From the NCBI GenBank assembly GCA_013115145.1, contig JAAPAO010000254.1, positions 1 through 46,426 on the forward strand: DNA of 46,426 nt, in the 5' to 3' direction. Within the stretch, counting starts at the first letter, position 1. Each line of letters opens with the position of its first letter. Origin of the DNA: Perkinsus chesapeaki ATCC PRA-425 (lineage: Eukaryota; Protista; Perkinsozoa). The position numbers were made by a program, and so were the translations under genes. Below, piece by piece: positions 16,881 through 45,235 of this stretch. Below the pieces are notes generated by a model. That model was given only the letters and a program-made list of their open reading frames with translations. It ran no database searches and was not told the DNA's origin.

Positions 16881-17510
16881 TTAGCTGCTGCATTGGCTCA
16901 ATCCTTTTATCAGACTGAATTCGCCAATAACATTGAATAATTGATGGACTAACTTCAGTACAAACTCACGTTGTGACACAATCAAATATCTAAATTAAAA
17001 ATCACTCTGCTGGGAATCGAACTCGCGTCCACCTGGGCTTGTGCCGATGGCGCATAAACCGCCACCGTGTTCAGATGTAGATTGTAGGTGAACCGCCGGT
17101 CTATTATGGATGTGATATTATCATTGATCTATTGTTGATAGTTGTTTTATTTTCATAATGCCACATTCATTCGACCCTTTTAATCAAATGCCCACTGGAG
17201 ATTATTCCAATTCGGTTCATATAACCATGATGGATTCAACAACTCCACCAAAGACATCAGGAGGAGGGAAGTCGTTGGACGAGGCACAAAGCGATATCGT
17301 CGGAAATCTTGATCTTAAAAAGTTCAAGATAATGGGAACACCATCAACTGTAATAGTATCTTTATCATCTCTGAAATGTACACTTCAATCTCTCTTAGCT
17401 CTCCGTGTTTTCTGACACCTCTAGCGCTGTTATCTCTACACCAGAGCCAGAACCACAATGCCTGCTTGCATGTGGAGTACTGGGCAAGGGTCGTGTGGTT
17501 ACTATCGGTC
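16881..17510 (-). CDS. Small multi-exon hypothetical protein
   Basis: Joinable exons ...YNLHLNTVAVYAPSAQAQ|IFDCVT|TLIKGLSQCSS-stop across GT-AG introns. The 5' part is unresolved. Confidence 0.35.
16990..17032 (-). other. 43-nt intron made of a tRNA-like T-arm/3' end plus T-run
   Basis: GTGGACGCGAGTTCGATTCCCAGCAGAGTGATTTTTAATTTAG on the minus strand. Confidence 0.6.
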
Positions 17511-17695
17511 ATGAAGGGTAATAGGGTTGAGGTTATTAATGTTGTATCTTAACAGATCTTCCATATAGACTAACCCATCAACTATTTGAACTTTGACATT
17601 ATATAAATTATAATTGTTGATTAAACTTTGACAGATATTAACATATTTAATGATCTATTTTCTAGTACGGTATCTCTGGTAGGCTGTCTTTAGAA

Positions 17696-19993
17696 ATGCC
17701 TTTATTTATGATAATTCCGCTATTATCCAGGTACATATCATTAGCCTTGGATGATGCCCCTCGAGATGAGGAATCTAAGGTTGCAGTTGAAGTCATGCAT
17801 CGAGCTAGGATATGGGCTTCCAGATCTGATAGGGCTGTTGTCGCTCGCTTGCATGAGGATCATAACACTATCATGACAAGAAGTGACTTTGACGTCATTG
17901 CGGTTCGAACCAACGACCTTCCGCTGAGAAGCCCGACGACTCCCCAAGTGGTGAATCGAGTCCTTTCTCTCGTACGAGATGAGGGTGTTGGGCTGTTGAT
18001 TGGCATTAACGGTTGGGGATGGGAATGCCTCAATAAAGGGCATACTATAGTGGAGCATCCAATGCAATCGATCGCGCTTCAAGCTGGGATATGCTTTGAA
18101 GCTGAGTATCTTCCTGGTTGTCGACCATTGAGTGGTGATAGAAAGGTTACCCAATTGAGTGAAGTTAGTAAGGCATCGTTCCACACTTTGGTTCCTCTAA
18201 TGAAGGTTTGTGTGGTGCCTGGCAAGTCCACCCCAATCGGTGATATGGTACTAGGAGCAGTTGATCAACGATTACATCTTACAGATGATGACAAGAGGAT
18301 GATACGACAGCTGCTGGTAGATGGAGCTTCAGGGAGATGGAGAGCCGGCAATGGAGTTACCAAGACAAATCTTATGCAGCTCCTTGGAACATTTTTGGAA
18401 TTCGCACCACAGAAGATTCCTGGTGATGTCCGCTTGCAGGACGCTATCCATTATGCTGGCAAAGACTTCCCGGGTGTCTGTCCTGCTCCCGGTCAGGACG
18501 CATTGAGCCTGTCTGAAGGCACTGGGCAGGGAGAGGAGGTTGAAGTTCATTTCGAAGCTGTGTTGAAAGATACGCCCCATTCCTCGGTGACAGGGCGTAG
18601 CTTCGACCCTTGGATCAGTACAGGGGTGTATGCAAGGCCGGGGGAGACCATTCGAGTTAGTTTGGAATCTTTAATAAGATGCTCGAATGCTGAGGAGGCC
18701 GCTAAAGGGCAAGGCAGCCCAGTGCAGATGGCTGAGGTTCTGGCGGAGGATAGCGGGTTCAGGGTCAGAATCGGGTGCCATAAAGATGACAATTCAAAGT
18801 TGGACAGCTGGAGAAGGTGGCCTAGAATCTCTGCGGCGAGTAAAGATATCCTTTCTGGGAAGAATCTTGAGGTTGAGCTCACATCTGTGTTTGGTGGTCT
18901 AGTCTATATTGAGAGGATCCGTGAAAATGGAGTCGAGCCGAGTAAAGCAGGCAATGTGAATCTTAATGTTGATTCCATCCTGATGGCTTGCGCACGCGTG
19001 CAAGGCGGTGTTCCGGCCCTTTGGTGGTGCAGTGGTGTTTGGATGCTCGGTGGTCGTCCTGCGGAGAATCTCAAAAACCTTCCGCGTGCGGAGAATGCGT
19101 ATCCTCCTTGGGGTGAGGTCCAAGCTAAGCATCTTATCTTGACCCTTCCCACCCGGCTCCTCCTTGACCATGCTCTCGCCCTTAATGATGGTTGGGCTGA
19201 AACTGTCGCCGATTTTTGGGACAGAGTTGTGCGCAGTCATTGTGACATCGCCTGTCGACCAGTCTGTGGCGAGGAGCGTTTCCGCTTCGTATTTGATGTG
19301 CAGATATCTGCTGGCTGGATGCATAGTGGTTATCCTGTAATGGCACACGAGAAGCCGACAGCCGAAGATTCCTGCGCGGTTTGGGGGCCGGCGAATCTTC
19401 GTGGCGCGCACAGCCCTGGTAAGCTTCTCACGGACGGCGATTGGGGCCTCTTCCATGAGCTGGGGCATCATTTCCAGCGAAGGAGATGGACCTATAAATC
19501 CTGTGGAGAAGTTACGGTGAATCTGTTCAGTATGTACAGCATGATGACAATTATTGGTAAAAAGATTCCTACCAAAGATATGTCCAATGTTAAGGAAGGT
19601 CACCAGAAGGCTGAGGATTTCATAACTCAGAGGATCGCCTGTGAGGGAGGGGGACAGAATATCATTTCGGCTGCGCAGTGTCGGAAGCCTATAACTGATG
19701 CGTTGGATCAATGGAGCCCTTGGGTTGGTCTCACCATGTACGTCGATGTCATCGAGACCTTCGGCTGGGAGCTGCTGAGGAATGTTTTGAGGAGTTTCGA
19801 GCAGGATGGCACCTACGACCAGCAACCAGATCCCACTGAGTGGTGGGCGAGAGTGAGCAAAGCCTGTGGGGAGGGATTGTCACTTTACTGTCGGGTTTGG
19901 GGTGTACCAGTCGATCTGGATAGGATGGATAGGGAAGGTGGTGATTCGAGGGAACAATGGCTGCCAAGGTGGATTCAAGAAAAACTTATGTGA
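17696..19993 (+). CDS. Peptidase M60 / enhancin / TCAF(FAM115)-like zinc metallopeptidase, intronless
   Basis: 765-aa ORF with WISTGVYARPGE, VRIGCHKDD, FGGLVYI, PWGE, DVQISAGWMHSGYPVM and GDWGLFHELGH (HEXXH), followed by GEVTVNLFS (gluzincin third ligand). Confidence 0.92.
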   Translation: MPLFMIIPLLSRYISLALDDAPRDEESKVAVEVMHRARIWASRSDRAVVARLHEDHNTIMTRSDFDVIAVRTNDLPLRSPTTPQVVNRVLSLVRDEGVGLLIGINGWGWECLNKGHTIVEHPMQSIALQAGICFEAEYLPGCRPLSGDRKVTQLSEVSKASFHTLVPLMKVCVVPGKSTPIGDMVLGAVDQRLHLTDDDKRMIRQLLVDGASGRWRAGNGVTKTNLMQLLGTFLEFAPQKIPGDVRLQDAIHYAGKDFPGVCPAPGQDALSLSEGTGQGEEVEVHFEAVLKDTPHSSVTGRSFDPWISTGVYARPGETIRVSLESLIRCSNAEEAAKGQGSPVQMAEVLAEDSGFRVRIGCHKDDNSKLDSWRRWPRISAASKDILSGKNLEVELTSVFGGLVYIERIRENGVEPSKAGNVNLNVDSILMACARVQGGVPALWWCSGVWMLGGRPAENLKNLPRAENAYPPWGEVQAKHLILTLPTRLLLDHALALNDGWAETVADFWDRVVRSHCDIACRPVCGEERFRFVFDVQISAGWMHSGYPVMAHEKPTAEDSCAVWGPANLRGAHSPGKLLTDGDWGLFHELGHHFQRRRWTYKSCGEVTVNLFSMYSMMTIIGKKIPTKDMSNVKEGHQKAEDFITQRIACEGGGQNIISAAQCRKPITDALDQWSPWVGLTMYVDVIETFGWELLRNVLRSFEQDGTYDQQPDPTEWWARVSKACGEGLSLYCRVWGVPVDLDRMDREGGDSREQWLPRWIQEKLM

Positions 19994-20102
19994 GCCTTTA
20001 AAGGTTAATATTGACAGTTTATCGATAAATATAGGGGTTGCGTTGAGTTTAATTTGACATACTTTGTATCTTGCACGGTTTTAGCTTGGATTCTTCCGGA
20101 AC

Positions 20103-21056
20103 ATGGCTGCAAAGCCAGCTGCGAAGACCAAGGGTGAGAGACGCGGGTTCTATCCTCGGTGAGGGTGTTTTGTGATTTACTTAGGAAAGGAGATCAAAAC
20201 GAAAGGAATTCAAAAGAATGGGAAGAAGAATGCACACATTCATAAAGAAGGTAGTTTTCGAGAGGCATGCAATCTGACCTATTGTGTATCTTACCGGTTT
20301 CGGGCTTAGATACCAGAAAGAGCGAGTCTTCGACCGAGTCGATCGATGACATTTTCGGAGCTTTGAAGAAGGCACCAGTAAAGTTGAACCATGCATCTGA
20401 CGCAGAAAAAGATACTTCCAACAAAGCGATATCAGCTTCGTCATTATCGTCATCATCATCAATTCGGCCAAAGGGGCCCCTTGACGACCCGCTTGGACTC
20501 GCAAACCAATCAGAAGGGTCTCGTAAAAGGACGGAGGAAGGTTATAAAATATACACCGAAGAGGAACTTCGTATAGGAAAGGGAGGAAGTAATAATAGGA
20601 GGGGCAGGGGGGAAAGGTATAATGGTGTTATTAATAAGAATGAGATGTTAGATTGAATAATACTAAGGTATTGAATCAGTTCATCTTTCAAGTTGGTAGA
20701 GGCATGCTTATTAAACATATTAGTATAATAATAATATATAGCTCTGATCGGTCGTCCAAATAATCGTCCCTTCGTCACCGACTCACAGTATTAGTTATTT
20801 AATATAAAGGCTGCTTTCATACAGTTACTCGGCTAACTGTATGATCTCTTTTTCGACCCTCCTGTATACCCCCTCACTCAGAGTAACTCGAAGACTTTCC
20901 AAAATGTATTAGCAATTCGATTTGGTTTATAATGTCGAGCTTTAATACAAGTAGTTCAGCAAATAGGGCTCTTTAGTGGGGGGGCTCCATCTTAACCTAT
21001 TTAGTATCTTTTCAGATACTCCCGATTGTCCGTTCGATTGTTGGTGTTGTTTCTAG
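20103..21056 (+). CDS. DUF1764-family eukaryotic protein of unknown function
   Basis: Starts MAAKPAAKTK. Contains DDIFGAL, SRKRTEEGYKIYTEEELRIGKGG and, after an intron, TPDCPFDCWCCF-stop (21054-21056), the DUF1764 C-terminal signature. Confidence 0.85.
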
Positions 21057-21174
21057 TATTAACGTAAATTACTCAAGAGTTACTTGTTACTATTCCCCAG
21101 AGATTCTCGTCGAGTTCGGTTGTAGGCATTTTGAGCTGTGTTGTATCTTGCATGCTTCAAGGTTGGATTCTCTT

Positions 21175-23653
21175 ATGTCATCTGATTCTCTTCCTTCGGG
21201 TTGGACCCGATACACTACCGATGATGGTGAGGAATATTTCTTTAACGAAATTACCGAAGTAACTCAATGGGATCGGCCCACTCAACCGGCAACACGAGCC
21301 AGCGGCGGAGTAGGGAAGAAGAAGAATAAGAAGGATAAAGGAGAGTAATAATAACAGCGATGGACTACTGGAAATGCCCGACTAATAATAACGACTATGT
21401 GCTGTAGACGATTTGGATGGTAATTTGTAATAATAAAATATTATATATTGGTTAATTGATCACATTCCGGCAAACGGTTCGAGGGGGATTAGGTTGAACA
21501 AAGTAATTGGGTATAGAGTGGCTTTGCATCAGGTATGTCCCGATCGATGCTGGAGCTTTGATGGACGAAGGTTTCGAGGCTGCAGATGATAATGACACAA
21601 GAGGGAGTATGCCTCCGTCTCAAGGTAATTACGTGGCGCGTGACTGGAGCGGATAACTCGATGAAATGTTCGTGTGAATTGTGGGAAATTGGATGAGATT
21701 AAGATAAGGCAAAAACAATAGAAGAAAATTCAGAACAGAAATTTAACTCGGGTTTTTGGGGTTTTCGGGTTTCTTGGGAAGAAATTTCTTCATCAGGTCC
21801 GATCAAATACGACGTTCCGATGGTAAACTTCGGAAATGATTCAAACACAACAACAGAGGGGGAGGAGACGAATCCAAATCGATCAGCCGATCGATCCAAA
21901 GTCCTCAACCTCGACGGGCAACTAGATTCAGCTCCGAAGCGTTCAACTGGGGCAGAAGATGCCCCACAGTCCTCATCATCATCAACTGGAAGTTGGCTTT
22001 GGTCTAAATTGACTTGTGGACTGACATTAAGTTATATACAGGATAACTTCTTTGATGTAATAGGTCCCGGGTTCGATCCCTGACTGAAGTGTTTTCATCA
22101 TTTTTAGGTTACATCTCGCGATGTTCAGGGTCGTCTTTTCCTTGCAATGTGGCCATACAGGTGACTAAAATTTCCCGGAATCTCTGCAGATTTTTTTATT
22201 TTTTTTCTGTCAGGCTCTCTCTACTATCGCCAAGCTCATCCCTTCATTTGCCGTCTCCCGGTGGTTCTTCTCAAACCGGCGGTCGAATCGCTCAGTTTTT
22301 CGGTTCACATTTTGCGGATTCTATCCAGTTGTTATCTTCATATAGGAGCAATCCTGACCTCTGGGGTAATCGAAAGGTCCCGAGTTCGAATCCCGCACCT
22401 GTCATCAATTTTCAGGCCCGTTTTGGATCTGTACAACTGCTGTTATTTTTCTCACCGCGACCGCTAATTTCTCTCGTCAATTATTGGGCGGGAATGAAGA
22501 GAAAGGTCATATCACAGATTACACTTTAGCGGGTAGGTCGTGGGTTCGATTCCCGACTCGTGCATTTTTCCTCTAAAAATATTCCATACAGCCTTTATGA
22601 TAAAGGTAAAAAATGTACGACTAATGATTTGGTAATTTACGATGCTTTTTACATTCCTTGTGTATACCGCGATACAGACAAACTGCCGGCGAAGGATTTC
22701 CTGAATAAATAATTGAATGCGGAGGAATGAGTGTGTTGTATTTGTGGTTGGTGTCAGGCACCGCGTGGTTTGTCCTATTTGGTGTCATGATACTCGGTCC
22801 TTTAATCACATTAGGGCTTCTTGTATGGGCTACGAATCAGTCGGGGAACTCTGAATCGGAAGAGTCTGGCTGGTGGACAAATCTTCCAGCATGGCTTCAA
22901 CCGGGGACAGGACGACACAATACCTATGTTATTGATGATAGCACTACTAATACAATTGATAACTATGCTGTCCCTCCAGCTCATGGTCAGACAGGTGGTG
23001 GGAAGACATCTCTTTGGCTGTTATTAACTAGTGCTTATGGTTACAGTATGTCGGTGATGCTGCCAATGTCAATATTATGGATAGTACCTATTGGATGGGT
23101 TAAGACATTGACCTGTGCTTTAGGGTAAGAGGAGGAATAAGTGAGAGATCGAAGCATAGGAACTAGGAAGAAAGTTGCGAAGCTTTCAGAAAATAACAAA
23201 CTAGAAGAGTAGTTTGTAAAAATATAAAATATGACTCTATGAATGCTGTAATTTATGTGGGTAATTATTGGTATTAAACCATCTGTAAAGTGAGCAGCTG
23301 TAGTGGCTTTATCAACTCTGTTTCGGATGCATCCACCGAATTTCGGTGTTTTAACATAGTAGATTTAATAAGCAGCTGGTTGATGTTATTTCAGGTTCCT
23401 AACTGCGATGGTTTTCCTTTATATAACCTTATTACGTACAGGAGGAGTTGATGGTACTGCGTCTGGTGATTCACCAATACTTCAGAGATTGGGTGTCACC
23501 ACTTCAAATGCGAAGACTAGGGTACAAGTTGCTTTAATAACTGCTTTGGTAGCTGTTGTGATGGAGGGAGGTATCTGGGCTTCATGCAGGTAAGATACAA
23601 AACAGGTCAAGAATGTTACTAGTGATTTCTTTAGGTTATATTTTCTCGCTTGA
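21175..23653 (+). CDS. WW domain + Yip1 domain (YIPF1/2-like) membrane protein, multi-exon
   Basis: N-terminal WW domain LPSGWTRYTTDDGEEYFFNEITEVTQWDRP. Spliced Yip1 motifs FFD|VTSRDVQGRLFLAMWP, NPDLW|GPFWICTTAVIF and SAYGYSMSVMLPMSILWIVP. Ends CR|LYFLA-stop. Confidence 0.85.
22057..22107 (+). other. 51-nt Yip1 intron with tRNA-like T-arm and T-run
   Basis: GTAATAGGTCCCGGGTTCGATCCCTGACTGAAGTGTTTT...TAG. Removal gives FFD|VTSRDV. Confidence 0.85.
22366..22415 (+). other. 50-nt Yip1 intron resembling a tRNA 3' half
   Basis: GTAATCGAAAGGTCCCGAGTTCGAATCCCGCACCTGTCATCAATTTTCAG. Removal restores the conserved PDLWGPFWI. Confidence 0.9.
22533..22757 (+). other. Yip1 intron starting with a tRNA-like T-arm/3' end plus TTTTT (acceptor 22757 preferred, 22591 possible)
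   Basis: GTAGGTCGTGGGTTCGATTCCCGACTCGTGCATTTTT lies directly after the donor. Acceptor 22757 gives DYTLA|GTAWFVLFG. Confidence 0.75.
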
Positions 23654-23699
23654 ATGCGGATAGTATTAAAGCTGGCAGCAGACTAACTGTACTTTTCTG

Positions 23700-24275
23700 A
23701 GCTCTAATATGACTTGATTTTTTAAAACTTGTGAAGTATTTCTGGAAAATTATGATTCCATGAATCGTATGAAAAGTTGATAAACCTTCTTGTTGAGTGT
23801 GACGGCATGAGATATGTTCGTACCTCATCATCATCCCTAGTTAGGATTCCCTGAAGCTCTGCTCGGATGGGTACCTCTCACCAAAATCTTGGACGTTCCG
23901 GAAATATCCGATTTGACTTCCTCTAAGAGAAGTTGGTCAAGTTGCTAACTTTCAGTGTCAATTAACTCCACCACTCGACTCACTCTATATCATCACGTAA
24001 CTGACGGGCAATAAGATTCCAAATAGTCCAAACTCTCGGCGGCCAATAACTCGTCATCGTCGGAGTGTTGCTGTTTGTTTCTGATAGTTCTTCTATCTCG
24101 CCATTGGCCTTTGTACCTGTTCCTTTATAAAAATCACCACAAAGAGTTATCTTAAATTGAATGGAATCAATTCGATATAAGCGAAGTCGTCCAGGAGATT
24201 GCTGTCATCATCATTATCAACTTCAACAACTCCTTCAAGGCTCACTTCCACCCGCTGGAGATAAACTACAGTCAT
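23700..24275 (-). CDS. Small multi-exon hypothetical protein, head-to-head with the CCDC97-like gene
   Basis: Exon-like frames MTVVYLQRVEVSLEGVVEVDNDDSNLLDDFAYIELIPF and RYKGQWRDRRTIRNKQQHSDDDELLAAESLDYLESYC. Structure unresolved. Confidence 0.35.
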
Positions 24276-24295
24276 CTAGTGTCGTAGAGGCCGTC

Positions 24296-26017
24296 ATGAA
24301 AAGCCCACTGTAATTTCGTGGCGCGTGACGTTTATGTAACGGTGGTGTTAGGTTCTCTGAGATACCATTGCCTGGAGGGATTTATTATGATAAAGAGAAA
24401 GGAGAATATCGGAACAAGTTCACCAACGAGAAGGTAAATTTTCGAACTCGAGAAATTAGCTAAATTGCGGCAGCTGTTGGCAACAGCCTGTTGTCATTGT
24501 AAACAGCGCCACAATTTGTCTAATTTTCAGGCTGTTTTCGATTCCCTTTTGTCTCTTTTAACGAAGTCGCCACATAACTTCTTCGAAAGATATCAAAGGT
24601 TGATCACAACTCAACCCAAACTGTTGGCGTACTTCGCAGATTTGGCGGCAAATGGCGATCCCGAGGTGACTTTGAGAAAATAATCTCGATTACGTCCCCA
24701 ATAGGTACAAGCGTTCGTTCAAGGAGCGTCACGCGCCACGAAATGCTATAAGATTGACGGTCAGCCGGCTGACGTCACCAAGAACTGTAAAGTTGTTGGG
24801 CATCGGAGAGTTTTATGGATTCAACGAGAGGAAGGGAAATCCAATGGATACTTTTCCGAAGCACAAATGCGACGGCGTGACGCGGGCTTGTGGCACTCTT
24901 TAGTGGGAAAATATGAAAAGGGAGGCGGAGCGAAGCAGCAGCAGTTGATCGATGCTGTTAATGATGATGAATATGATAAAGCTGATGAGAATGGAAAAAG
25001 GGAGATTAGGAAAGCTTATATTGTTGGTAGGTGGGAATGGCCATCGTGACACATGGCATCCACTGTCCACTTTAATGATTATTGTTAATTGTTTCATTTT
25101 GGGCATATGTCCTTGGTGAGAGTTATCTCACCAAACGCCACAGTGCCGTGGTTGAATGACCATACGATCCGATGATGATGATCCAACTTTTGAGCAACAC
25201 AACCAGGACGGCAGATCCTCGCGGGAATAAAACGATTATCTCGTGCGGACAGTAGTTACCGAATATAATGATCATGCCTTCCGGTAACCACCACCACGAC
25301 CACGGTGATGATATCTGCTAACCATTGGCCGTATTGTCGTCGGACTTCACTATTGTTGTTGTTCGATTCACATTGCTTTACAACTCATCTCGCTGAGCTA
25401 AGGACGGGGGGCTAGCTGAAATGTAATGACTTTCTTTCGAAGTGTCGTTCACGATTTGGAGTATCTCGAGGTTGAGCGTGCGAGATACACTTAATGTCAG
25501 ATCAAATGGAAGCACATCTTCATGATGGAAGTGCACCACACTATAATCCTAGACTCGAGCCTCTCAGTGATGAGTTCATTACCGAGGCGATCGACTTGGC
25601 CGATTTCGACGCTGAGGCTGCAGACTGTCGAGAGGAGCGAGTCCAAGCGCTCAGAAAGACTATGGAGGTGAGAATGAAGTTTGTTGGATAACTCTACGGT
25701 CTTATACGGGATGAAATAAATTTACAAAAAATGATACTTCCCATATCTCATTGGTCCGATAGAAAGTATAGAGGTATACGTCAAAACTGGGGGCAAGAGT
25801 TGATCTCTTCTTTCGATATATTTTATTAATTTTCAGGCGCGCTTCCTCGATGGTCGAGATGGCCGATTTATCGATTACACCGAAATTGATGATGATGAGG
25901 AACTGGAAGCTTTCATCAGTCGAGAAGCGGAATTGGTAACCTTGGTCAATTTCGTGGCGAGTGAATGTTTATCTATTACAGGATATCCAAGAGAAGTATT
26001 TTGACGAATCTGAATAA
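24296..26017 (+). CDS. CCDC97: CCDC97 (DUF2052)-like protein, multi-exon
   Basis: Spliced motifs FFERYQRLI, GYFSEAQMRRRDAGLWHSLVGKY, EERVQALRKTME|ARFLDGRDGRFIDYTEIDDD and DIQEKYFDESE-stop. Confidence 0.8.
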
Positions 26018-26160
26018 ACGTCACGCGCCACGAAAATCGTGTTAACATTTGCGAAGTTGATATACTTGTTACTCTACGTACTGTCTCAACCGCATAATGC
26101 CGAGTTGACCTAAAGATTTTTAATTTTGTGGCGCAGTGACTTTTTACCATCATTGCTGCC

Positions 26161-27054
26161 ATGACTTCTTCACCATTGAGCAATACCTCCCCCAGAATTC
26201 GTACATCCTTCAGTCGGTTAGATTTTGAGGTGTTTGGTAAAGTTCAAGGAGTATTCTTCCGACGGGATGCAGCAAGAGAGGCTGAAAGGCTTGGTCTGCA
26301 TGGATGGTAGGTTACGTACAATGCTTCTAATCGTTTCCTATATCGTCGATTCATCACTCGAACAACAGGGGAAGAGGATGGGTGAGCACCGTCAGTTTTT
26401 ACACTGGCGACGGTGCTCATAAACGATCGGGGGAAATAGCTGTTCTATTGCCTCCTTCGTTTTTTGCTTTAATTTCAATGGAGGTACGAAATGAGCTCGC
26501 GCATGGACGTACAATGGGGAGGCGGTAAACCGCGTTGACCGCCTATAAATATTGCTCAATTTTGGTGAAGTTGATATTCATGTAATTGTTCTTCATATCA
26601 TTTTAATACTTGTTATTTCATTAGGTGTATGAACACACCGAGAGGGACAGTGGAAGGATGCATTGAAGGACCGGCAAAAATAGTCGATGAAATGGTCTAC
26701 TGGCTCGGCAATGTTGGGAGCAAAAGAGTGAGGCATCCATTCGCTATATAACTCACCACGTAGACTGTTATTTGGGAATCCCGAGTGCTGTTTAATTTGC
26801 TTTACAGAAGCAGGAAAGGGAATTTTTTCTTCATTTGTTGAATGAAACTTCGTGCTCGTTTTCTCCCTTTCGATTGGTTCCTTCATAAATATAATTATCG
26901 CAAGCTACGTACGTTGTTTGTTTCAGGCCCGAATAGATAGATTGGAAGTGAAGGACAGAAATGAGATATCCGTTGACGATCGTCAGTTCACTTCATTTGT
27001 GGTAAGGCCTCCTATCATTTAATTATAATTCCCTTCATTTAGGTGCGCCAATAA
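26161..27054 (+). CDS. ACYP: Acylphosphatase
   Basis: [29 protein letters not shown]|[16 protein letters not shown]...WLGNVGSKR|ARIDRLEV...FTSFV|VRQ-stop, including the VQGVxFR signature and the catalytic-site Asn. Confidence 0.92.
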
Positions 27055-27199: not shown

Positions 27200-29370
27200 G
27201 AACACGGCCGCCATCACCCCAACCGTCGTCTCCCTCTTTCCACAATAAATAAGTGTTATCTGCAGTCCTTTGAAGGAAAGTGTACGCTGACAGATGGCTG
27301 ATGGCCTATCACTATAATACCGATATCCTTTGCTAACTTATCATCAAGTAAAGTGCGACGAATTCAACAGTCTGAGCTCGCGCCTGCTAATAAACTACTA
27401 GTATTGTCTTACGTAAAACTCGGTATTGTTATGAGTAGTAATACTATACAACAAAATACAAAATAATTGATATGAATGAAAGCATAATCATGCAAACGAC
27501 CTGCCAACGCATGGATTCGTGAACCCTTTCAGTTCCGGATCGTTCAAGACTTTCTTTACCCCAACAACAGCTGCGAATATAGCGCTTGTTACCACGACCA
27601 CCAAAAGGAGAAGAATCAGCCCAGATTGGCGACCTTAATGAGATACTGGCAAATCTGTAGAGATGCGCGGCTTACCATGTCTTTCGACAGCCTTTGTGAT
27701 ATAAAGTGTTCCAAAAAGTGCTCCAAGAAAGGCTAGGATTCCATAAAGCAGAGTTTGGTTACCAACGAGGTGACCTGAATTGGAGAAGACTCCCCTGAAT
27801 TGCTCGATGTCATTCAATTCCGAACTGCACCGCCGTTGGGATGAACAACATAATGGATGCGAATCTACGACGAGCTCTTCAGACTATCAATACTTGAGAC
27901 TCAATTTCGCTAATTTGTCGAGAAATAAGAGCCCACTGTATCACACCAATAACGAGCTTGCACAAAACAATATTCTCACCCTCCATTGCCAGTTGCCCCG
28001 CAGCTATACTGCTGGTCATAAGCACTGCTATGGCTGATGTCGCTGTTGCCACCGTTGGCTTCTTACCAAGGCTCAACAACAAAGGACCGAATATCATACC
28101 ACCACCGATGCCGATAACAGCACTAGCCATGCCACCAAATAGACTTAATAAAGAATAGGCCATTATAGAAGGTCGATGATGAGGACGATGAGGGTGCTCA
28201 GGAGTTGACACTTCACTTGGAGCAGAGGAGACACGAGTGCCTTGTCTGAAGAAGTTTCGGACTAATGTATAAAAAAAACTTTAAGATTTCGTAATAGCTT
28301 AAATCGATTCATAATAATTAAAAGTGAATATTGAGTACTCCAGTGAGCTATATTATGTCAAGTTACCGTTTACTTTTCTTCTTACATGAATGATATTATC
28401 ATTAATATTCCAACTGCTGCGGCCATCACCATCCAATAGGTCGAAGAGCAGATCTCGAGACCTGCCGTCGCTACCAATTCGATATTTTTAGGTCTTACCG
28501 ATGACTGAGGGAGTCCTATGGCCTCCGAGAATGAGCGTGATTAGCCACACCATCGCCCAGGAAGCCACCAACTCTCCTCCAGTGGCAAAGGAGCTTCGCT
28601 CCGCCTGCACGACTAATTTATTCAATGAATTGTTCTCTGTTAGTAGCGGTCTGTTCATCGAGTTACGATATTCTTTTCTCCTGCCAAAGGTTGTGGGTTC
28701 GAATCCATGGCGGGCATTTTACCTTGCTTTTTGGAACCTCCCAAAAGCTGAATAGGCAACCCATAGAAGAACGAAGACTGTTAATAAAAGAATGAACCAA
28801 TCTGGGCAGGACTTGCTGATCATCACACCTGACATGGGTTGAGGTGAAGAGTAATACTACTCGGTGGAGTGGAGTACTTTATAATAAAGATGGGGATAGC
28901 TGGAAGAGGAGAGGCTTTGTTAATACTGGGTTGTCAATTAAGAGGGAGTTCGAGGAGAAGAATAGTTAAGTCCAGAAATTAAAACCAAATCTATTTAATT
29001 AATTCAATATCGGTTTTATGATTGAAATGTGATGAATCCCAGCAAAGACACTTCTCGAATTTGGCAATGGAATCTTTTATCATTCTCTCACCGATTATCG
29101 TTCCAGCATTAGCCGCCGGCACCATGACAAGGCACGCTCCATAATCAACCAACCCAGACCTGACAAAAGGACCGCCGCTGCGCCACAAAACTAATACGAT
29201 CATTGCAACCTGATATTAACCATAGCTGCCGCCACTGCAGCGAAGGTTACGAGAGTGACCGAAAGTGCCGCACTTTGATGAGCACCGAGTGGAGCCGTAA
29301 GACCGAAAATGCCACTGTTAATAAGGGGAACGAATACCCCTCCACCGCCGATACCTAAAAGAGAGTATGA
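27200..29370 (-). CDS. Sulfite exporter TauE/SafE family membrane protein, multi-exon (ends approximate)
   Basis: Two GIGGG motifs (GIGGGGVFVPLI; SAVIGIGGGMIFGPLLLSLGKKPTVATATSA), plus LVDYGACLVMVPAANAGTIIG, CPDWFILLL and many transmembrane segments. Confidence 0.85.
28681..28722 (-). other. 42-nt intron that is entirely the antisense of a tRNA-like 3' end plus TTTT
   Basis: Plus strand CTGCCAAAGGTTGTGGGTTCGAATCCATGGCGGGCATTTTAC; minus strand GTAAAATG...TTTGGCAG. Unspliced it gives an in-frame TAA; spliced it gives FQKA|RRKEY. Confidence 0.9.
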
Positions 29371-30666
29371 CCAGGCAGCAGCTTTTACTAAAAGTTAGAT
29401 GACTCTCCCGAAGAAGCGTCGTAATCCACCCGGCAGCGGCCTACTGAGGTACCCGCTCTGCCCGAAAAAGTCGGGACGGCCCGTGAGAGCGCCTGGCGCT
29501 GCCCGGGCGATGCCTGCCGCCTCCTCTAGTCAATTGTGTTGTTACTAATCCTTCAGCCTCACCGTATTACCGAGTAACTGTTACTCTAGTAAGCTATAGT
29601 AGTCTAGAAGCTGCCCGAGCAGGGCACTGTTAGTACTGTGGCAAAAGTTTGGCCTCGTACCGCGACAATTATATACATTTAATAGCGTGTGTCATTCCCG
29701 CTATAATGTTCCCATCGTAGAGACTCTGCGGCAGAAACTTTCTCGCCAGGATTTTTTGTAGGCTGAGGGCGGGAAGGCCCAGCCAGCGGCATGCCGGGCA
29801 GCCATGTGCGCTCGAAAGGAATACGACGCTTTCTAAAAGCCTTTTAGAAGCCTTGAAGCCTTCCTTAATCGATAGACGCCATGATAGTGTTGTATGATAA
29901 AATGGAGCATTATATGAATCGCTTTGAAGAGGAGATGTTGTGATTAGCTACGCTGAATGGTTCATTCCGCGGCGCCACGGAGGCCTAGTTTCCGCAACGG
30001 AACACATCCCCTCTGACCTCGACCTTACCTGCCGATATGCACAAAGCGCTGATGGAGGCGAAGATGAGTCCAATGATAGCTTCTTTCAAGGGGGAATCCT
30101 TGGCAACTACAAAACAGTCTTTAACCTATTTGAGAATGTTTAAATAGCTCCGTTGAAGTATTATCAATAAATTAAAGACTTAGTCTACAACTAGTCTTAA
30201 ACTTGTCGGACTGTTTAATCATCTGCGTAAGTTCATCACCACTCTTTATATCAACATTATCAATTGGAGGCAGTGGAGGTTGCTATATCAGCATACTTTT
30301 TGCAATTGGCCATTTGTACACGTAGTTGTATTAAACAGGAGTTGGTCGGCGGCGGCGGTGTTGGGAGTATATTGTCCTACTTTCTATTTCTTCTGTATCA
30401 TCGTTGATGACAGCAGCTGCCGCTGCTAAGCTGATGGTTAGGACAATAAGAATACGATACTTCATATTAGGATACCACTACGAATGGTGACATCTAATTT
30501 CGCGGCGCTGCGGTCAGTTAATAACCATAGCGCATATGTAACGTAGCAGTATACAATTTTAGTGGACTTCCTCAAACCTTCACCGCGCCACAAAAGTAAC
30601 CAACTCGAATCTTACCAACATGTGAAACTGTAATTTTACGTCAGCACTGAATTCTAGACGTTTTAT

Positions 30667-33200: not shown

Positions 33201-34309
33201 AGATAAACCATTTTTGCTGTTTCTATTCATTACTTATACAATTTATGTAAGACTACTTCAACGAAGATTTGTGTCAAATGCATTTCGCGGCGAGTGACTT
33301 TCGACAAAGGCATGCGTGGTCGGAAAACACAGGGGACAAAAAGGTGCCAACAATGCAATGTAGTTTTACCGTAGAAGTTTTGCGTGTGACATAAAAGATA
33401 CGTTTTGATGCGCTTTGGAGATCGTTACTGCTGCTGACACGGATAGATCCGAAAGACTATCATAAAGTTGATAAATCCACTTATATATCTCATAACCCGA
33501 GACAGCTTGATTCCCAGATCAATGTCCAATACAAGTTGATTAAAATATTATAAAGTTAGTATTGCTACTCATTAGCAACTACCTTATAAGAAGGAAACCC
33601 CGAAAGATGAGGAAACTGAGCTACACTTGTAACAGTTCCACAGAGATTACGGTGACAAATTCTTAAGTATAAGATATTCCCTCCACTATTACCTCCAAAC
33701 ATCCAACATGAAAGGCATGCTCACAGCAATCCATTTTAGCATAACGAGGAGGCCCGTCTATAGATGCCATACCACACTGGTCTTCATTAGAAAATATCTC
33801 GCGGCAAATGGGACACTCGAGCGGGGTGCCATTAGCCGAGGCGAATCCAGCTTCAACGAAGGAAAGCTGAAATGGAAAAATAATGAAAGGTGCTGAATTG
33901 AGCTAGTCAGCTGAGCAGATATAGGCGAGAGAAGAGGAGGGATATGCAATTATATATAGAAATGATTACACAATGGTCGAGATGGGTATTAAGATACCTT
34001 AATTCCTCAAGGTAGGCCTCGAGAGAGAGTGAGAATGCTGAATCAGTAGCCTATATTGAAGCCTGTATTGTGAGGGTCCATAGAATTAGTGTCCAAAGCA
34101 GCCCCTTATGTGGTATTAGCACTCAAATGCTTGAATTGGCAGCTTGCCAAAATACTCACCTTAAAGATATCAAATGAAAAATATCTGATGGAGCTGATAA
34201 CGGCTGTGCATGCATTTCAAATAGTACTTATAATGTTAGTAGAGAGATGAATGATAACCACGTAAAGGTGAGCCCCATGCCAGTACCTCTTGTTTGAAAT
34301 GCCCTTTAC

Positions 34310-36510: not shown

Positions 36511-36547
36511 ACTTGTAACTTACAACTTGTAAGTTACAAGTTGTAAG
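36511..36547. repeat. Overlapping nested palindromes (15-bp and 14-bp arms, 1-nt loops)
   Basis: ACTTGTAACTTACAA-C-TTGTAAGTTACAAGT (36511-36541) and CTTACAACTTGTAA-G-TTACAAGTTGTAAG (36519-36547). Confidence 0.9.
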
Positions 36548-37699: not shown

Positions 37700-40528
37700 G
37701 CGGTTTACCACTTACTTCGTAAGTTCAACCGGATGCACTATGTGTACTCTTAGCTCCATTCTTGTCAATTTTGACCACGAAGTCCGGAGGGTTCTTACTC
37801 CTTCAGATCCGATACCCCATTCATCATGGAACCAAAAGCTCAATAAAGCTATTTAAACTGGAATACTTCGGCATGCTACAGTTGTGGTGAGGTACGATTC
37901 CGCTGCTGCATTGACGAATGATGTCGACTCGCTTGGAATTGGCCGCTGAAACTGAAGCTCGATTTTAGCCTGGAATGTCTCATTTGCAGCTGATTCAATC
38001 GACTTCCACCCCTCCGAGGAGACTCGTTTCCTTGCAAGAGAATGGAACAGCTTCCTAGATCATTTCACGACTAACCTTCGCACCCAGCGAGAGCCTCATC
38101 CAGTTGATCCTTAAGAAGTTCAACTTGCGTCACCAGCGACCGCTCAATGTTGCATCTGTCCATATAATATTCAACTTGTCCCTCCGAATGGTCCTCCGAA
38201 CTTACTGGCCTTCCCTGAGCTTCCGTAATTCCTCTTCTTTTTCCATCAAACCTTCCCTCAATTCTGCCACCAATTCATCGCTTCTGTCTTGTCCAGATGC
38301 AGCACGCAGAATTTGATACCCTCTTTCCACTTCAGTTTTCAGCCGTCGTGCCGCGGCATCTCTCCTCTTCATTTCGTTCGCACCAGCAGCCACGTCCCTC
38401 CTCAGCGAATCAATTTGAGATTCCAACAAGCCGAGCTGTTCCCGCGCTAAATTAGCCGACATCTCATTCGTATCGGCGCGTTCAAAGGCCTCTTGAAAGT
38501 CGGCAGCGAGGCGGGTGCTGACATTTCCACCTTCGACATGTTCGTGTTCCTCATTGAACTTACTTTTCTAATCTCGCCTTGTCGAGATCCTCTCTCAACT
38601 GTCGCCTCTCATCGCCTATCTCCGTTAGCATTTGCTCGTACTTGTCAACTTTGGAACTTAACAAGGCTCGTTCGTGGAACCACTCGGATGCCGCAGCACT
38701 CTGAGCCGTTGTGACACCTGTCATGATGTCGTAGATTCCTGCATCGAACTACTCCAGTCAATCGGCTCTTATGGATATAACACGCTATTCAAAAAACGGT
38801 TTCGTAGCGGCAAGCGCGATGGTCCATGGCCGATGGATGTATTCTGTCACTTACCACTCAGTTCTCCTGTTTTCTTCGATATTTCCTCCTCGAGCTTGCG
38901 TATCTTCTCTCGTGCCTCCTCTAGCTGTCCTGGTAAATGTCCAGCTGAATCCATCGCGCTTTTTAGTTCAAGCGCCGCAAGATGTGCCTGCAATACCGAT
39001 CCCAACGAGGACTCCAATTCGCGTACGTCTTGTTTGGCATGATCTCTCTCTTTTTCGATGTCTCGACATGCTTTCTCCGATTTGCTCAAAGAGGTCGAGA
39101 GGTGGTTCACTTCGGTTTTTAGCCGATCAATCTCTGCTCTGTACATTTCACAATCTCCCCGCAGGTACTCTACTTCGTCTTTGGCGCTGACCAAGCTCAT
39201 CATGTCGATGCTAGTTCTTTTACCCCTACCTGGAGGCTTCATCGCGAAGCTGCTGAGTTTCGACTTTCTGTCTTGCAGTGGCCTGTATGTCATTCATAGA
39301 AACATGCAGCTCATGGCTCCTAAGGACCTAGACGCAGGTTCGAATACCGTCAACGGCATCTTCGGACCAAAGCTCTCTTCAAAACTGTCAATTCCATTTC
39401 CATTCGGGTGAGGTCCTCTTTTAGCCGAACGTTTTCAGCTTCCATTAAAGCCGTGGAAGCAGCGCGTCTTCTGCCGGCTTCAGTCGATCGGACCGACTTC
39501 GGGGAATCATCTCCCTAAAACTAAGAAATCATCAAGTTGCACATAACATTCCCTAACGAGCAATTCTGATCAGGCAGAAGAGGCGTCCAACTGACCCTTC
39601 CACTTTTGAACCCACTTTTTCAGACCATCACGAAACCCGCCGATACTCGGGAGAAAATATCCCCCCGTGAACTCTTACACTTACAGAGTGGTCGCTGTAC
39701 CGTTTTGAGCAGCCAGCTGATTTGAACCTCGTCAACTCCTCTTGCGCAGCTTCGAGTCGACCTTCAAGTTTCCGAATGGTGGACTTGTTTTTCGTCAGTT
39801 GTTGCTCGAAGGTTGTTCGCTCGTCCAGCTAAATCATTGAAACTGTCCATGCCACACAACCTTGACCAGTGATAACGGATCGTAAAATACCAACATATCA
39901 GAGCTCCGCGGGGAATTGGCTAATCAAAGAACGGAGACGAATGGATCGAACTTAAAGTCTTTTAAGTTCATAATTTCATCGGTAGTCAATGATATAAGTT
40001 TTGTTGTACTGTATTTATGGCAAAGCTTGTTTGTGCAGCTGATTCGTGTTAAAATGACTTACCAATCGATCGAGGCTGAGGGATGCACTCTGTAATTCGC
40101 CATGCGTCCTTGCAAGCCTTGCTCGTGTTGCCTTCAATTCTCCAATGAGGAAAGCTATCTTCTTTTCTTGCTTCTCGAGGATATTTCTCAGTTGCATCGA
40201 CTCGCCGACAGCCCCTCGAACTTCTCGAGCATGGCGTGCCGACTGAGACATCAACTCCGAGGTCAGTGCAGCCGTCGAGGCTGTGTGAGACAAAGATGAC
40301 AAGGACCTGACGAACGATATGGATAACAAACAAGCCCCCAACTGACCTCCGCGCTGACATCGGCTCTCCCAGAGGGATTATGTCGCTTGTGGTGTTCAAC
40401 GCTGGACTCCTAGACCGTCTTAAAGGTGAAGAGTGAACTGGGGAGCCAGAGCCCCACGTCGGGGAGTAGGAGCCTGTGTAGGGCGAGTCTGGCCTAATAG
40501 TTGACATGGTCGGCTGAGGGCCGGTCAT
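37700..40528 (-). CDS. Large coiled-coil protein, multi-exon (3' end approximate)
   Basis: Ser/Pro-rich first exon (MTGPQPTMS...) followed by several same-strand E/K/R/L-rich heptad exons (40015-40341, 38847-39293, 38202-38462). Checked join VFEPAS|RPLQD. Confidence 0.7.
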
Positions 40529-41045: not shown

Positions 41046-42150
41046 TCACTTCTCACTGAAGACAACCAGAAACACAAACATCAATAAAGAGATGACGTCA
41101 TTCGTGTGACTTAGGAACGCAACATGAAGAAGGTTCGTTCGAGGAGAGTTTGAGGAAGCTGCTGTAAAGCTCAAGTACAATATAAAATGAAAAACGATCT
41201 GATGAAAGGACTGGTGCGGCAGGCCCGATGGTCCATTCCCGAAGATGAGCGGAGAAGTCTGAGAAGCCTGCCTATAACTGCCTACCGAGTGCGGCTCGGC
41301 AGGCACCACCACAAGTCACCAACTTACCAAACTAAGTAGAAAGCTTGTTCAAGTACTATAAATCTTAAAGGGCTCTACTGCCCATCCCTTTTCTTGAATA
41401 TTCCGTGAGCGCGGAGGAGCTTTATGAGAGAACTTTCATGCGTGTGTTCAAGTTTATTAACAACTCGACATCGTATATCCATTTATTATATTTACACTTT
41501 TAATAGGTTTGTTTGATACAGTTTTCAATGATAAGAGTGACTGACTACATCGTCTGTGCAGGTCAGTGAAAACAGCAGTATAGTCACATGTAGCCGATGA
41601 TCGGTACAACTTCTACAAAAATATACAATCAATCGAACGCTTCATTCTTCAATCTAGACAATTATTTCGTTGTTATCAACATCCGCAAACTCCGCGCTTC
41701 CTTCGACTTGGGATGCCTCCCGAAGCTCATCCTTGCCGCGTTGATTCGGCGTGGTGGGTGCAAGATCCGCCGAGCTCAACAAACGAATTCTACCCACCAA
41801 GGAGGCATGGTCGGAAGTTCGGTTACTAAAATGGAGGTCATGAGGATCGAACCCGCGACCGTCTGATTGAAGGACTCACGTATTGTGACTGTTGATTTGC
41901 TTCCTTAACCCTTTTTCTTCTTGTTTATCACCGCTAAGCATCGCTCTAGCACAAGCATTTCTGAGAGGAAGGTCGGCTCGCCACATCTGGGCTGGAGCAA
42001 CTGTCACCATCATAACCTACATCACAAAGCAGCACTACAGAAATATGTCTGTAAATCACATTGAGCCATTTAAAAGTCATTCCATCATTCTCAACGATGG
42101 GGATATTCCAAAACGACTTGGTGTTTCTCAGCAACTCCTTTGAATATCAT
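41046..42150 (-). CDS. Hypothetical multi-exon coding region (separate gene or 3' extension of the EEP gene)
   Basis: In-frame join MLSGDKQEEKGLRKQINSHN|TNRTSDHASLVGRIRLL across intron 41826-41879. Confidence 0.45.
41826..41879 (-). other. 54-nt intron made of a tRNA-like 3' half plus TTTT
   Basis: GTGAGTCCTTCAATCAGACGGTCGCGGGTTCGATCCTCATGACCTCCATTTTAG. Unspliced it gives an in-frame TGA. Confidence 0.8.
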
Positions 42151-42689
42151 ACCGTAGGGAAGCCACTCACAAGAGCTCTCGAGGGTTGTATTCGTTACCA
42201 AAATATTGAAGGAAAGAAGTAATGGATATTATTGCCTGCTATCAATCCACTATTGGTGCCCTACTACTTCTAGCCAGTCTAAATAAGTACAATTACGCCC
42301 AATAAAAACAGGACGGGTGAATTGATCGGTCCGGGCAACATCAAACCACTATTGCTAATACCCCTCCTAGTAGTACTTTACGAAAGATGTCATGCAAATA
42401 AATTCACGAAATAAAGATGCCTATAAGCAGCAGTTGTACCATTCCTCTAATCTCATTTATCTTACCTCATGTGAGCTGCTAGAGCTGCTGCTTGCACTCG
42501 TAGAGCTAAGGTTGCTATCAGCAGCTGGCCTATTACCAGTGACACCTGACGACACATACACAATAATTCAAAGTTCCAAGATGTCTGAAGTAACTAGTCC
42601 TCCTCCTCACCCACCCCCAAACAGTCCATAATCCCCAACGACGACGACGGAAGCGCTTCATAGGGATTCCAATTGGGGCGAACATTTGT

Positions 42690-45235
42690 TAAATTATAAA
42701 CAAAACCAAATAGGTAATACATTTCCAGTGAGAATAACGTAGCTCGACCTTCATGTCTTGCCAGCAGTTGCCGTTTAGTCCCGAAAATTGGCATTCTGTT
42801 CCGAGCTCACCTTGACTGCCTCCACATGACACCGGACTAACCGCACCGCTTTTAACCCACAAGTAATCCAATCGTTTCGGACAAGACGGGACATCCTGAA
42901 CACCTTATACCTTTCACGCGCCACGAAATTCCCTACCTGGTCGCTTGTTACACCATATTTCGCCAGAGTTTCATCGCTCATCTCTCCCCAATTCCCCTGA
43001 TAACTCGGCGGGTGCGGCAACCTCTCCTTATCGGCGTGCAATTGCCAAACATCCTGGAAGCCCGCATTGCCGAGGAAGTCCTTGACCCTTTCATAAACGC
43101 TCGTTGGTTTATTCGTTATTAGACTTTCTGTTTCTTCAGATGACAGAGAGGTGCTACGGCCTGTTCGAGTTGGGGAGGGAGGGCACCGAATGGAAGACTG
43201 AAAAGGGTCGAAATTCATCTGTGGCACTCGAAACACACTGCGCTGTCGGTAAAGTCTTCGGTTTGTCTATGTGCAAATAATGCGATAGATAGGTAGTCTA
43301 ATATAGAATCAACGATACACCGCGTAATAACATTATTGACCTATTATTTTGTTAATATATAACTTGATATTATTTATTTTACTACCAAACTTTATTACTA
43401 CTGCCACGTCGTCTATCGGCCCAAGTATAATCACTATTAAATAGAGACTTGAGTATGAATTCCGATGCGGACTACTTAAAGTATAGTAAAACCCGACATA
43501 TGAATTGGATGTCGAATACTATACAGACGATACCCGATTCACTCCATAAGCAGTCGAGTAAGCCATATCGACCCAACAGCTCTCCCCTTCCTCTATCACC
43601 TTATTCCTCTTCCCCTCCTCCATCATCTTGTCTCGTCCAGTTCCATCAATATTCCAATCACCAGTCATAACAGCTGCCGCAACACGCAAGCCTTTATTAG
43701 CACATTCCTTCTCCAGATACGCTACAACGTCCAATACGACTTTCTAAAATTTACAAATCAATTATAAAAATGCCTCCATGAAATGCTACCAGTTGTGCGA
43801 GCTTGACATCGGAGTCGTGGCCTGCATCGAGATGGGTCGTAGCGACTATCACCACCTGAACAGCGTAGATCATCGACCGGGAAGTGCAATGATGATTGAC
43901 AAAACCGTATTTAGGAATCCTAAGCATTATTATCGTATTTAGGAATTCAGCCCAAGCAAAAGACAGGCTTTTAGGATAATTAAGCCATTTATCATACTTA
44001 GTACGTTCGAGGTACCGTTGGATAAGGAACTCATAGATTATCGAATCACATTGAATACCACAGAACTTCTAGAGCGGAAAAATGGAAGCGGTTACTGTTG
44101 GAAGCTGCTACAAGCTGATCACATTTATCGATCCCTGGCATTATTAATATTACATTAATATTATGCCATATTTCCTACTGCTAATACTGTATTACTTTAA
44201 TTAAGCAGCATCAACTTCCCACAAGTAAAGCATTTAATGATCACTTCAGCTGTACGAATCTATCTTATACAAGAATTTCTGTCGCTCGAGTAACACTTCT
44301 TGGGCTCGCAAGTACAGGAAAGCCGGCGAGGGTGGATAGATACCGCATTGAGCCTCAGTGATAGAAATCGAATAACCACCATCCATAAGGTATTACATCA
44401 CTCCCTCTATCCAAAACAACCCCAAGGGCTCCTTTAGACGCCATGGCATCCTCGCCAGTGGCAACAGTAAACCTATTAAATCTGACAAAAAAAAAGAATC
44501 ACCGAGGATCGAGCCAGAGACCACTTACTTTTCCATGAGTATCGGCCACCTCGACATTATAATCAACCCCGAGTCCAAGAACTTAGTGGGTGCCGAACAC
44601 TCACAAACATGTGTGCCAAAAGCTTTAGTAGAGTATTTCAATTGGGTATCTATCAACCATTATATCATTTATTATAATCGATTTCTCCTTTTCGTCGCAC
44701 AGCAGCCACTTAGATAACGAAACGCACCCAAAAGACCGTCTGGTGATACGGACACTCCCACGGAGTTATATACCTCTAAGCCCTTAATAAGCATGAAGGT
44801 GACACATACTGTTGAAAAGGCTACACATATCCTAATATTACTAAGATTCATGTGCAAAACGAAGTAGAGGAGCGCAGCAGCAGCCTCCACCATAAGACGG
44901 CTCAAACCCCAACGGGCCCCATGACCTTAATTTTGACAAATTCCCTTTGAATTTCAAATCCATAGAATTTACCGTATGACAAATAGTATTTTTATGCCTA
45001 ATGATTAGCAAGACCATTATTACGGTTCTGAACATATCGGACGACTTCTCCTCTCGCAAAGAACCTCCCACAAAATAAAGCATTTATCATGCTTGCAACA
45101 GCCGACTGCTGATCCGTCCACGCCTCTTGAAGTGTTATTACCTGAACACGAGGAGTTCTCATCTACAACACCACCAAATTTCGTGATGATAACTTGACGG
45201 TTTCGATAATGAGCGCATAGACTTCTCGTGTACAT
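42690..45235 (-). CDS. Endonuclease/exonuclease/phosphatase superfamily, sphingomyelin phosphodiesterase (neutral SMase)-like, multi-exon; ends approximate
   Basis: Spliced motifs KFLDSGLIIMSRWPILME|KFNRFTVATGEDAMASKGALGV, AAVMTGDWNID, GFQDVW and PKRLDYLWV. The terminal SDH motif was not located. Confidence 0.8.
44482..44528 (-). other. 47-nt intron with a degenerate tRNA-like T-arm and a T9 run
   Basis: GTAAGTGGTCTCTGGCTCGATCCTCGGTGATTCTTTTTTTTTGTCAG. Removal restores SRWPILMEKFNRF. Confidence 0.75.

Follow-up and report, generated by a model that had tools for sequence, protein, structure and literature searches.

tRNA-like 3′-end modules with a T-run 13 nt beyond the T loop, most of them in short introns of a Perkinsus chesapeaki contig

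Lone promoter boxes of RNA polymerase III (Pol III), repeated units that fill introns and tRNA-derived repeats have all been described, and each has something in common with the elements considered here, tRNA-like 3′-end modules in the genome of the shellfish parasite Perkinsus chesapeaki. The window analysed is the whole of contig JAAPAO010000254.1 (GCA_013115145.1; 46,426 nucleotides, nt). The extra TFIIIC (ETC) sites of budding yeast and the chromosome-organizing clamp (COC) sites of fission yeast, where TFIIIC is found at a B box only, resemble the Perkinsus modules in having a lone B box without an A box that is kept between species, in Perkinsus at several sites but not at all of them. 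They are however intergenic and not recognisable as tRNA tails, whereas the putative Perkinsus sites lie in spliceosomal introns and carry a tRNA variable loop, a 13-nt geometry and an oligo-T run. Introners and introner-like elements (PMC9860276, PMC12130899; for Amoebophrya, PMC7789003) are similar in that a repeated unit makes up nearly the whole of a short intron and supplies some of its splice signals, but they form young families of near-identical copies with transposon hallmarks. The Perkinsus relics share a tRNA core only, differ in their tails, and are orthologous and old in three lineages; where a relic is absent from P. chesapeaki, the intron itself persists.

Two further systems are built from tRNA genes. 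Short interspersed nuclear elements (SINEs) derived from tRNAs likewise scatter a Pol III promoter element through genes, often in introns, but they have both A and B boxes, a body, and a tail that is A-rich or of the type of long interspersed nuclear elements (LINEs), whereas the Perkinsus modules comprise about tRNA positions 44-73 only, have no A box and run into oligo-T right after position 73. As for tRNA genes and pseudogenes nested in introns, intact Perkinsus tRNA genes do occur in or beside host genes and the relics are collinear with them; the relics nevertheless fail all tRNA tests and have no 5′ half, but do have an adjacent T-run. The modules do not show the defining features of functional tRNA genes, introners, tRNA-derived SINEs or retrocopies of mature tRNAs, and full-text literature searches found no paper on tRNA-tail relics filling Perkinsus introns.

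Each module consists of AGGTC, a 5-nt T-stem strand, a 7-nt T loop (the B box) and then 13 nt, here called the tail, and all line up with tRNA positions 44-73. With a profile made from the modules themselves, 11 were found in the window at E ≤ 0.01, the next match having E = 0.5, and the B-box pattern GGTTCGAWNCC with at most one mismatch occurs 19 times against 4.2 expected. The observation is real and far beyond chance; judged by their letters, these would be eleven worn tail ends of tRNA genes, most of them occupying tiny introns. Their density is patchy, with 11 in the 46-kilobase (kb) window and almost none (one intact tRNA gene) on a second P. chesapeaki contig, JAAPAO010000193.1 (25 kb; L007), which was reached through one weak match of an open reading frame (ORF) of the P. 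olseni locus L004. The modules are as follows, the Yip1 gene being the WW-Yip1-CCD97 gene.

22057-22107, plus strand: intron A of the Yip1 gene, 51 nt, with a sense relic; AGGTC 22062-22066, T loop 22072-22078, tail 22079-22091, T4 22092-22095.
22366-22415, plus strand: intron C of the Yip1 gene, 50 nt, with a sense relic; T loop 22385-22391, tail 22392-22404 ending in CA, then TCAA, T4 22409-22412 and CAG.
22533-22591, plus strand: intron D of the Yip1 gene, 59 nt, with a sense relic; T loop 22545-22551, tail 22552-22564, T5 22565-22569.
20134-20184, plus strand: intron of an unannotated DUF1764 gene, 51 nt, with a sense relic; mutated T loop TTCTATC 20148-20154, tail 20155-20167, T4 20168-20171.
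41826-41879, minus strand: last intron of the Exo_endo_phos gene, 54 nt, with a sense relic; T loop 41851-41845, tail 41844-41832 ending in CCA, T4 41831-41828, AG 41827-41826.
44482-44528, minus strand: putative intron of the Exo_endo_phos gene, 47 nt, with a sense relic; T loop CTCGATC 44513-44507, 11-nt tail, T9 44495-44487, GTCAG.
32191-32239, minus strand: annotated intron 1 of FOL47_004479, 49 nt, with a sense relic; T loop 32211-32205, tail 32204-32192, no T-run.
28681-28722, plus strand: antisense relic making up the entire intron (42 nt) of an unannotated TauE gene of the minus strand; T loop 28698-28704, 12-nt tail, T4 28717-28720.
6900-6951, plus strand: relic, itself at 6921-6951, antisense to a RAP/U-box gene; AGGTC at 6922, T loop 6932-6938, tail 6939-6951, no T-run.
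16997-17031, minus strand: relic outside annotated genes, between the S28 and M60 peptidase genes; T loop 17021-17015, tail 17014-17002, T5 17001-16997 (E = 9 × 10⁻⁵).
17889-17920, minus strand: tRNA-like module antisense in coding exon 3 of the M60 gene; AGGTC, GTTGG, TTCGAAC and 13 nt ending in CA, no T-run.

The feature that sets these modules apart is the distance from the end of the 7-nt T loop to the start of the first TTTT, which we call the offset. Named by the first base of the T loop, five modules have it at exactly 13 nt, namely 20148(+), 22072(+), 22545(+), 41851(−) and 17021(−). Offsets of 11, 12 and 17 nt were found at 44513(−), 28698(+) and 22385(+), the last having two orthologues with 13, and no T-run follows 32211(−), 6932(+) or 17909(−). 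With a null of 0.0041 per position, a T-run at exactly +13 in 5 of the 32 B-box matches in the window has P = 2 × 10⁻⁷; taking instead the rate of T4 starts in 16 annotated non-relic introns (0.010-0.012 per nt) still gives about 10⁻⁷ for 5 of the 11 modules. We also scanned 158 kb of Perkinsus DNA with a profile of 21 nt that ends two bases past the T loop and so is not biased by the tail. This sample covered three lineages: P. chesapeaki, two P. olseni isolates, and a lineage nearer P. olseni represented by a Logan contig of run SRR12548988 (L002). The scan returned 29 modules, two of which are intact tRNA genes, and none in a negative control of 38 kb of bacterial loci. The offsets were 13 (12 modules), 14 (four), 12 and 17 (two each), 10, 15 and 55 (one each), and none (six), the module with offset 55 and one of those without a T-run being the intact tRNA genes. 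Across the lineages, 12 of the 27 relic modules therefore have an offset of 13 and 18 of the 27 one of 12-14, with runs of T4-T6. By its letters, the run after position 73 would count as a terminator-like oligo-T feature. The control included the loci of two bacterial M60-like proteins, which had been considered as Perkinsus paralogues and were rejected as bacterial.

An initial annotation of this DNA had pointed to the 13-nt spacing, and most of what it described was found again. The eight strings that it quoted are all present, its coordinates being the low end of the relic or intron and four of the eight lying on the minus strand. Its 13 nt to the T-run hold at 22057, 22533, 41826 and 16990 (T loops 22072, 22545, 41851 and 17021), as do its 12 nt at 28681 and 11 nt at 44482, and the sharp peak at 13 that it proposed to look for is the one described above. 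The sites 22366 and 32191, which it also counted as 13 nt, do have 13-nt tails, but the T-run of the former stands at 17 and the latter has none. It had missed the 13-nt case 20148(+) and left the T-run-less modules 6932(+) and 17909(−) unused. The decomposition that it offered, T stem 5 + acceptor strand 7 + discriminator 1, agrees with modules that are collinear with positions 44-73 and followed by pure T4-T6 after 73. Not one of 37 copies has CCA after position 73, so a mature CCA-tailed tRNA is not the source, as it had argued, and the tails differ among relics, which points to several parents, as it had also suggested. A pyrimidine occupies tail position 12 in 14 of the 17 independent groups of relics (P = 0.006), which fits tRNA position 72 opposite G1. 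Tail position 13 reads as a purine in 11 of 17, which alone is not significant.

None of the relics passes as a tRNA gene. ARAGORN called no tRNA gene in the window, its dozens of calls at lowered thresholds being spurious and left unused, and Rfam gave no tRNA match there even at E ≤ 10, only noise such as rspL and snoRNA-like hits in low-complexity DNA. The positive controls, three intact Perkinsus tRNA genes of L004 and L007, reach 65-71 bits. Upstream of the relics, with the upstream exon included, the best A-box score averages 6.0, with a null value of 5.7 and a score of 8 of 8 in intact tRNA genes, and no 5′ acceptor strand beyond chance was found over the same stretch. The B box of a type-2 Pol III unit is present, as shown by its enrichment and by an interspecies identity of 0.83, but the lack of an A box, which in such a unit stands about 30-60 nt upstream of the B box, leaves the promoter incomplete. 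The T stems pair at 2-5 of 5 positions in relics against 5 of 5 in intact tRNA genes, the poor pairing noted in the initial annotation. The conserved block spans 19-21 nt and is identical over 15 nt within positions 44-62 of an intact Perkinsus tRNA-Val. The premise that tRNA genes end in a T-run, which the initial annotation took as established, fits none of the three intact genes, whose first TTTT lies well downstream:

L004:158-231, minus strand: P. olseni tRNA-Val(CAC), first TTTT at 42 nt.
L004:2397-2468, plus strand: P. olseni tRNA-Gly(UCC), first TTTT at >400 nt.
L007:18578-18651, plus strand: P. chesapeaki tRNA-Val(CAC), first TTTT at 360 nt.

These intact genes are located within or beside protein-coding genes.

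The relics are old. Coding DNA is about 70-78% identical among the three lineages and ordinary intron sequence cannot be aligned, yet three relic introns of the Yip1 gene are orthologous in all three, with silent sites saturated between them. Compared in 13 interspecies pairs, AGGTC has an identity of 0.85 and the B box one of 0.83, the values falling to 0.63 at the outer T-stem positions, 0.51 over the seven acceptor-like bases and 0.23 at position 73 (A/G changes), and the first four T's stand at 0.6-0.8. The B box is well conserved in the three introns of the Yip1 gene, and likewise at 32211 and at 6932, but not at every relic. Intron A retains both its B box and its +13 T-run in the three lineages, and so does intron D its +13 T-run, though the intron end is 27 or 50 nt off. 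The 20134 intron has its counterpart in annotated intron 6 of the P. olseni protein P0004, and the P. olseni orthologue of the 32191 relic (L004 12027) has a tail shorter by 5 nt. For the intergenic 16997-17031 relic no recognisable orthologue was found by alignment, and a word-based protein search with an Exo_endo_phos exon gave no match from which orthologues of the 41826 and 44482 introns could be obtained. The module in the M60 exon is common to all three lineages and may be either an exonised relic or a coincidence kept by coding constraint.

Exact spliced mapping of the annotated protein P0014 confirms the 49-nt intron 32239-32191, and the P. olseni orthologues of the 20148 and 32211 introns are likewise confirmed by exact spliced mapping of annotated proteins. 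Excising 22057-22107, 22161-22213, 22366-22415 and 22533-22591 yields a single open frame with the Yip1 DLWGP motif, the gene having a relic in three of these four consecutive introns. Removal of the 54-nt intron 41879-41826 links two open frames up to the annotated stop, and one frame is open over the junction of the 47-nt intron 44528-44482, as it is over that of the TauE intron 28681-28722. In the RAP/U-box host, a search of splice-site pairs gave 6943-6900 on the minus strand (44 nt) as the best intron, whose donor was recovered in L002 as well as in the window; its first bases are the complement of T-stem positions 61-65, which leaves the acceptor-like tail in the coding sequence. The site 16990, which the initial annotation had listed with the others, lies between two annotated genes and not in an intron.

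Whether the T-run belongs to the module or to the 3′ splice site can be judged from the 13 sense introns with a clear 3′ splice site. Their distance from T loop to T-run is 13 in nine, 14 in two, and 15 and 17 in one each, while the distance from the start of the run to the intron end ranges from 6 to 50 nt. This second distance varies even between orthologues (intron A: 16, 34 and 28 nt; intron D: 27 and 50 nt), so the run is anchored to the module and not to the 3′ splice site. It begins 6-9 nt from the end in 41826, the 22366 orthologues and L001 13217, and adjoins the AG in these and in 44482; in the 22366 orthologues (P. olseni and the L002 lineage) a T5 begins at +13 immediately before CAG. 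Where it abuts the AG the run is the sole pyrimidine stretch and must be what the spliceosome sees, and it is thus the actual polypyrimidine tract in a subset of introns only. At 22057, 22533 and 20134 and their orthologues it lies 16-50 nt from the end, and most of these have a second short T/C stretch beside the AG, such as the T5 that adjoins the AG of intron A. The reuse of the T-run as polypyrimidine tract, as the initial annotation had it, accordingly holds for 41826, 44482 and the 22366 orthologues but not for the introns with distant runs, nor for 28681, where the relic is antisense and the complement of its T-run forms the 5′ splice site GTAAAA of the host. The run also occurs where it is unable to serve a host 3′ splice site, at the intergenic 17021 (T5 at 13), the antisense 28698 (T4 at 12) and the P. 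olseni relic L001 20244 between convergent genes (T4 at 13). A T4 within the last 20 nt was seen in only two of eight short non-relic introns, so it is no general need of Perkinsus introns. Splice sites made of tRNA letters recur among these genes: a donor GT is supplied by the complement of the T-stem stretch 61-65 (6943, minus) or by that of the T-run (28722, minus), or stands just before AGGTC (22533, plus; the GT is 2 nt upstream), and an acceptor AG coincides with positions 73/74 (32191, minus).

We consider it probable, at roughly 60%, that the modules are old copies of the 3′ ends of tRNA genes or of unprocessed pre-tRNAs (from about position 39/44 to 73, plus oligo-T), kept in minimal introns and with the T-run inherited. 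On this account most relics would reside in minimal spliceosomal introns (42-59 nt) of ordinary Perkinsus genes, and their 13 nt would be the T stem, acceptor strand and discriminator retained by descent. The spacing could persist because small insertions and deletions are rarer than substitutions, which would have scrambled the acceptor-like letters. The T-run is tied to the module regardless of orientation and of the 3′ splice site and would have arrived with it; in origin it would have been either a terminator for Pol III or the U tail that a Pol III transcript carried. Selection would since have kept the block of AGGTC and B box, most plausibly as a putative TFIIIC docking site resembling the B-box-only sites of yeast, and probably the T-run too, as a U-rich intron signal that would act as the polypyrimidine tract only where it adjoins the AG. 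It is conceivable that constraint extends past the B box.

Several observations weigh against this account. No TTTT lies within 40 nt of the discriminator in the three intact tRNA genes, and the two tRNA-Val genes, though orthologous, have unrelated trailers, so a parent with a discriminator followed directly by a T-run is unseen in a living gene (n = 3) and descent from a terminator is likely, short of shown. Three genes do not overturn it, but a U-tailed RNA intermediate, or selection acting on the distance from B box to T tract, would also be compatible with them. The block is also not kept everywhere. In the 20148 intron, P. olseni has an intact B box, whereas a 6-nt deletion has removed it in the L002 lineage; that of 28698 has decayed in P. 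olseni, where alignment of the two isolates shows a 13-nt tail and then TTTC; and the L001 2012 intron has a relic in P. olseni and the third lineage and none in P. chesapeaki, where the intron itself is still there. Splicing, moreover, is predicted from gene models, reading frames and conservation. Finally, T-stem pairing, at 53%, is no better than the 57% between unrelated relics, which gives no sign of selection on an RNA hairpin; maintenance of the pairing for an RNA-level function was accordingly rejected.

The same intact genes give two other explanations part of their appeal. Retro-insertion of RNA, in which 5′-truncated copies or 3′ halves of pre-tRNAs ending at the discriminator would have been inserted with a U tail (from Pol III termination, or added after RNase Z) that played the role of the poly(A) tail of ordinary retrocopies, would account for the zero-length trailer of most copies although the intact genes have no adjacent T-run, for the presence of the 3′ part only with 5′ ends varying from 0 to 20 nt before AGGTC, for the lack of CCA and for the many different parents. 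It is nonetheless unlikely, since the relics showed neither young copies nor target-site duplications, nor a reverse-transcriptase partner, all informative copies are old and common to lineages, and deletion in shrinking introns could equally have removed the 5′ half. Slightly less likely again is that the T-run was not inherited at all but owes its origin and maintenance to selection for a U-rich 3′ splice region, the pile-up at +13 arising only because minimal introns lost by deletion all that lay between relic end and tract. The intact genes without a near T-run would fit this too, as would the prevalence of sense relics in introns near minimal size (46-59 nt) and the run abutting the AG in five introns. 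A scrambled tail, however, offers deletions no boundary at which to stop, and yet the offset is exactly 13 in 12 copies; the run often lies 16-50 nt before the AG and keeps its +13 position when the intron end shifts; it is present in the intergenic, antisense and between-gene relics; and T4 is uncommon in other short introns.

That the modules are active Pol III elements, with TFIIIC at the B box recruiting Pol III and the T-run terminating a short transcript or blocking read-through, strikes us as improbable. Pure T4-T6 runs would suit a terminator, and the B box and the start of the run are jointly conserved in three lineages though the run is far from the splice site, but the type-2 promoter is incomplete without its A box and the intact tRNA genes seem to do without a near T-run. 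We regard a chance likeness, or a splicing motif such as a branch site that resembles the T loop, as very improbable indeed. TCGAT does fit a loose YYRAY, and in several short introns 16-32 nt separate the T-loop A from the AG, so that a branch site at the T loop is possible for some of them; as a general branch site it is ruled out by other relic introns in which this distance is 42-65 nt. Neither chance nor a branch site would be expected to give a block of 19-21 nt with an exact match to an intact tRNA-Val over 15 nt, enrichment and spacing so far beyond chance, or relics that are antisense and outside introns.

If the relics do descend from tRNA-gene tails as we propose, a protist would have filled many of its smallest introns with promoter-bearing ends of tRNA genes whose geometry has outlasted silent sites, and would offer a testable case of Pol III promoter and terminator parts persisting within genes of RNA polymerase II (Pol II). 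It would also show a ready-made sequence, with a T-run and with GT or AG near tRNA positions 44 and 73, co-opted as splice signals, and the contrast between the T-run of the relics and the intact Perkinsus genes without one bears on the way in which Pol III ends transcription in this lineage. A wider claim is doubtful, if somewhat less so than the rivals above: AGGTC, the B box, the 13 nt and the oligo-T might together be a living two-part element kept within minimal introns, a candidate TFIIIC/tauB landing site with a measured downstream T tract that would bring Pol III factors together with Pol II genes, for instance at boundaries or at splicing or elongation checkpoints, and/or U-tailed 3′ pieces of pre-tRNAs might be an undescribed source of intron sequence.

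The annotated genes of the window that matter for the modules are the following.

13633-16385, plus strand: S28 peptidase gene.
17158-19993, plus strand: M60 peptidase gene.
21175-27054, plus strand: WW-Yip1-CCD97 gene.
28991-32332, minus strand: FOL47_004479.
38071-40528, minus strand: gene for a protein of 552 amino acids (aa).
From 41654 upward, minus strand: Exo_endo_phos gene.

One ORF of the window, 765 aa long, shows 100% identity with the hypothetical protein FOL47_004477 of P. chesapeaki. Annotation gaps are seen at 20050-20656 (plus), 27400-28990 (minus) and 32556-33870 (minus), and the DUF1764 and TauE genes have no model. The model of FOL47_004479 probably lacks the 5′ RING-finger exons that are present in its P. 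olseni orthologue, P0015. In one P. olseni isolate, a second B-box module (L006:18470-18510, minus) lies about 108 nt upstream of the relic in Yip1 intron C, which is long there (about 200 nt) against 50 nt in P. chesapeaki.

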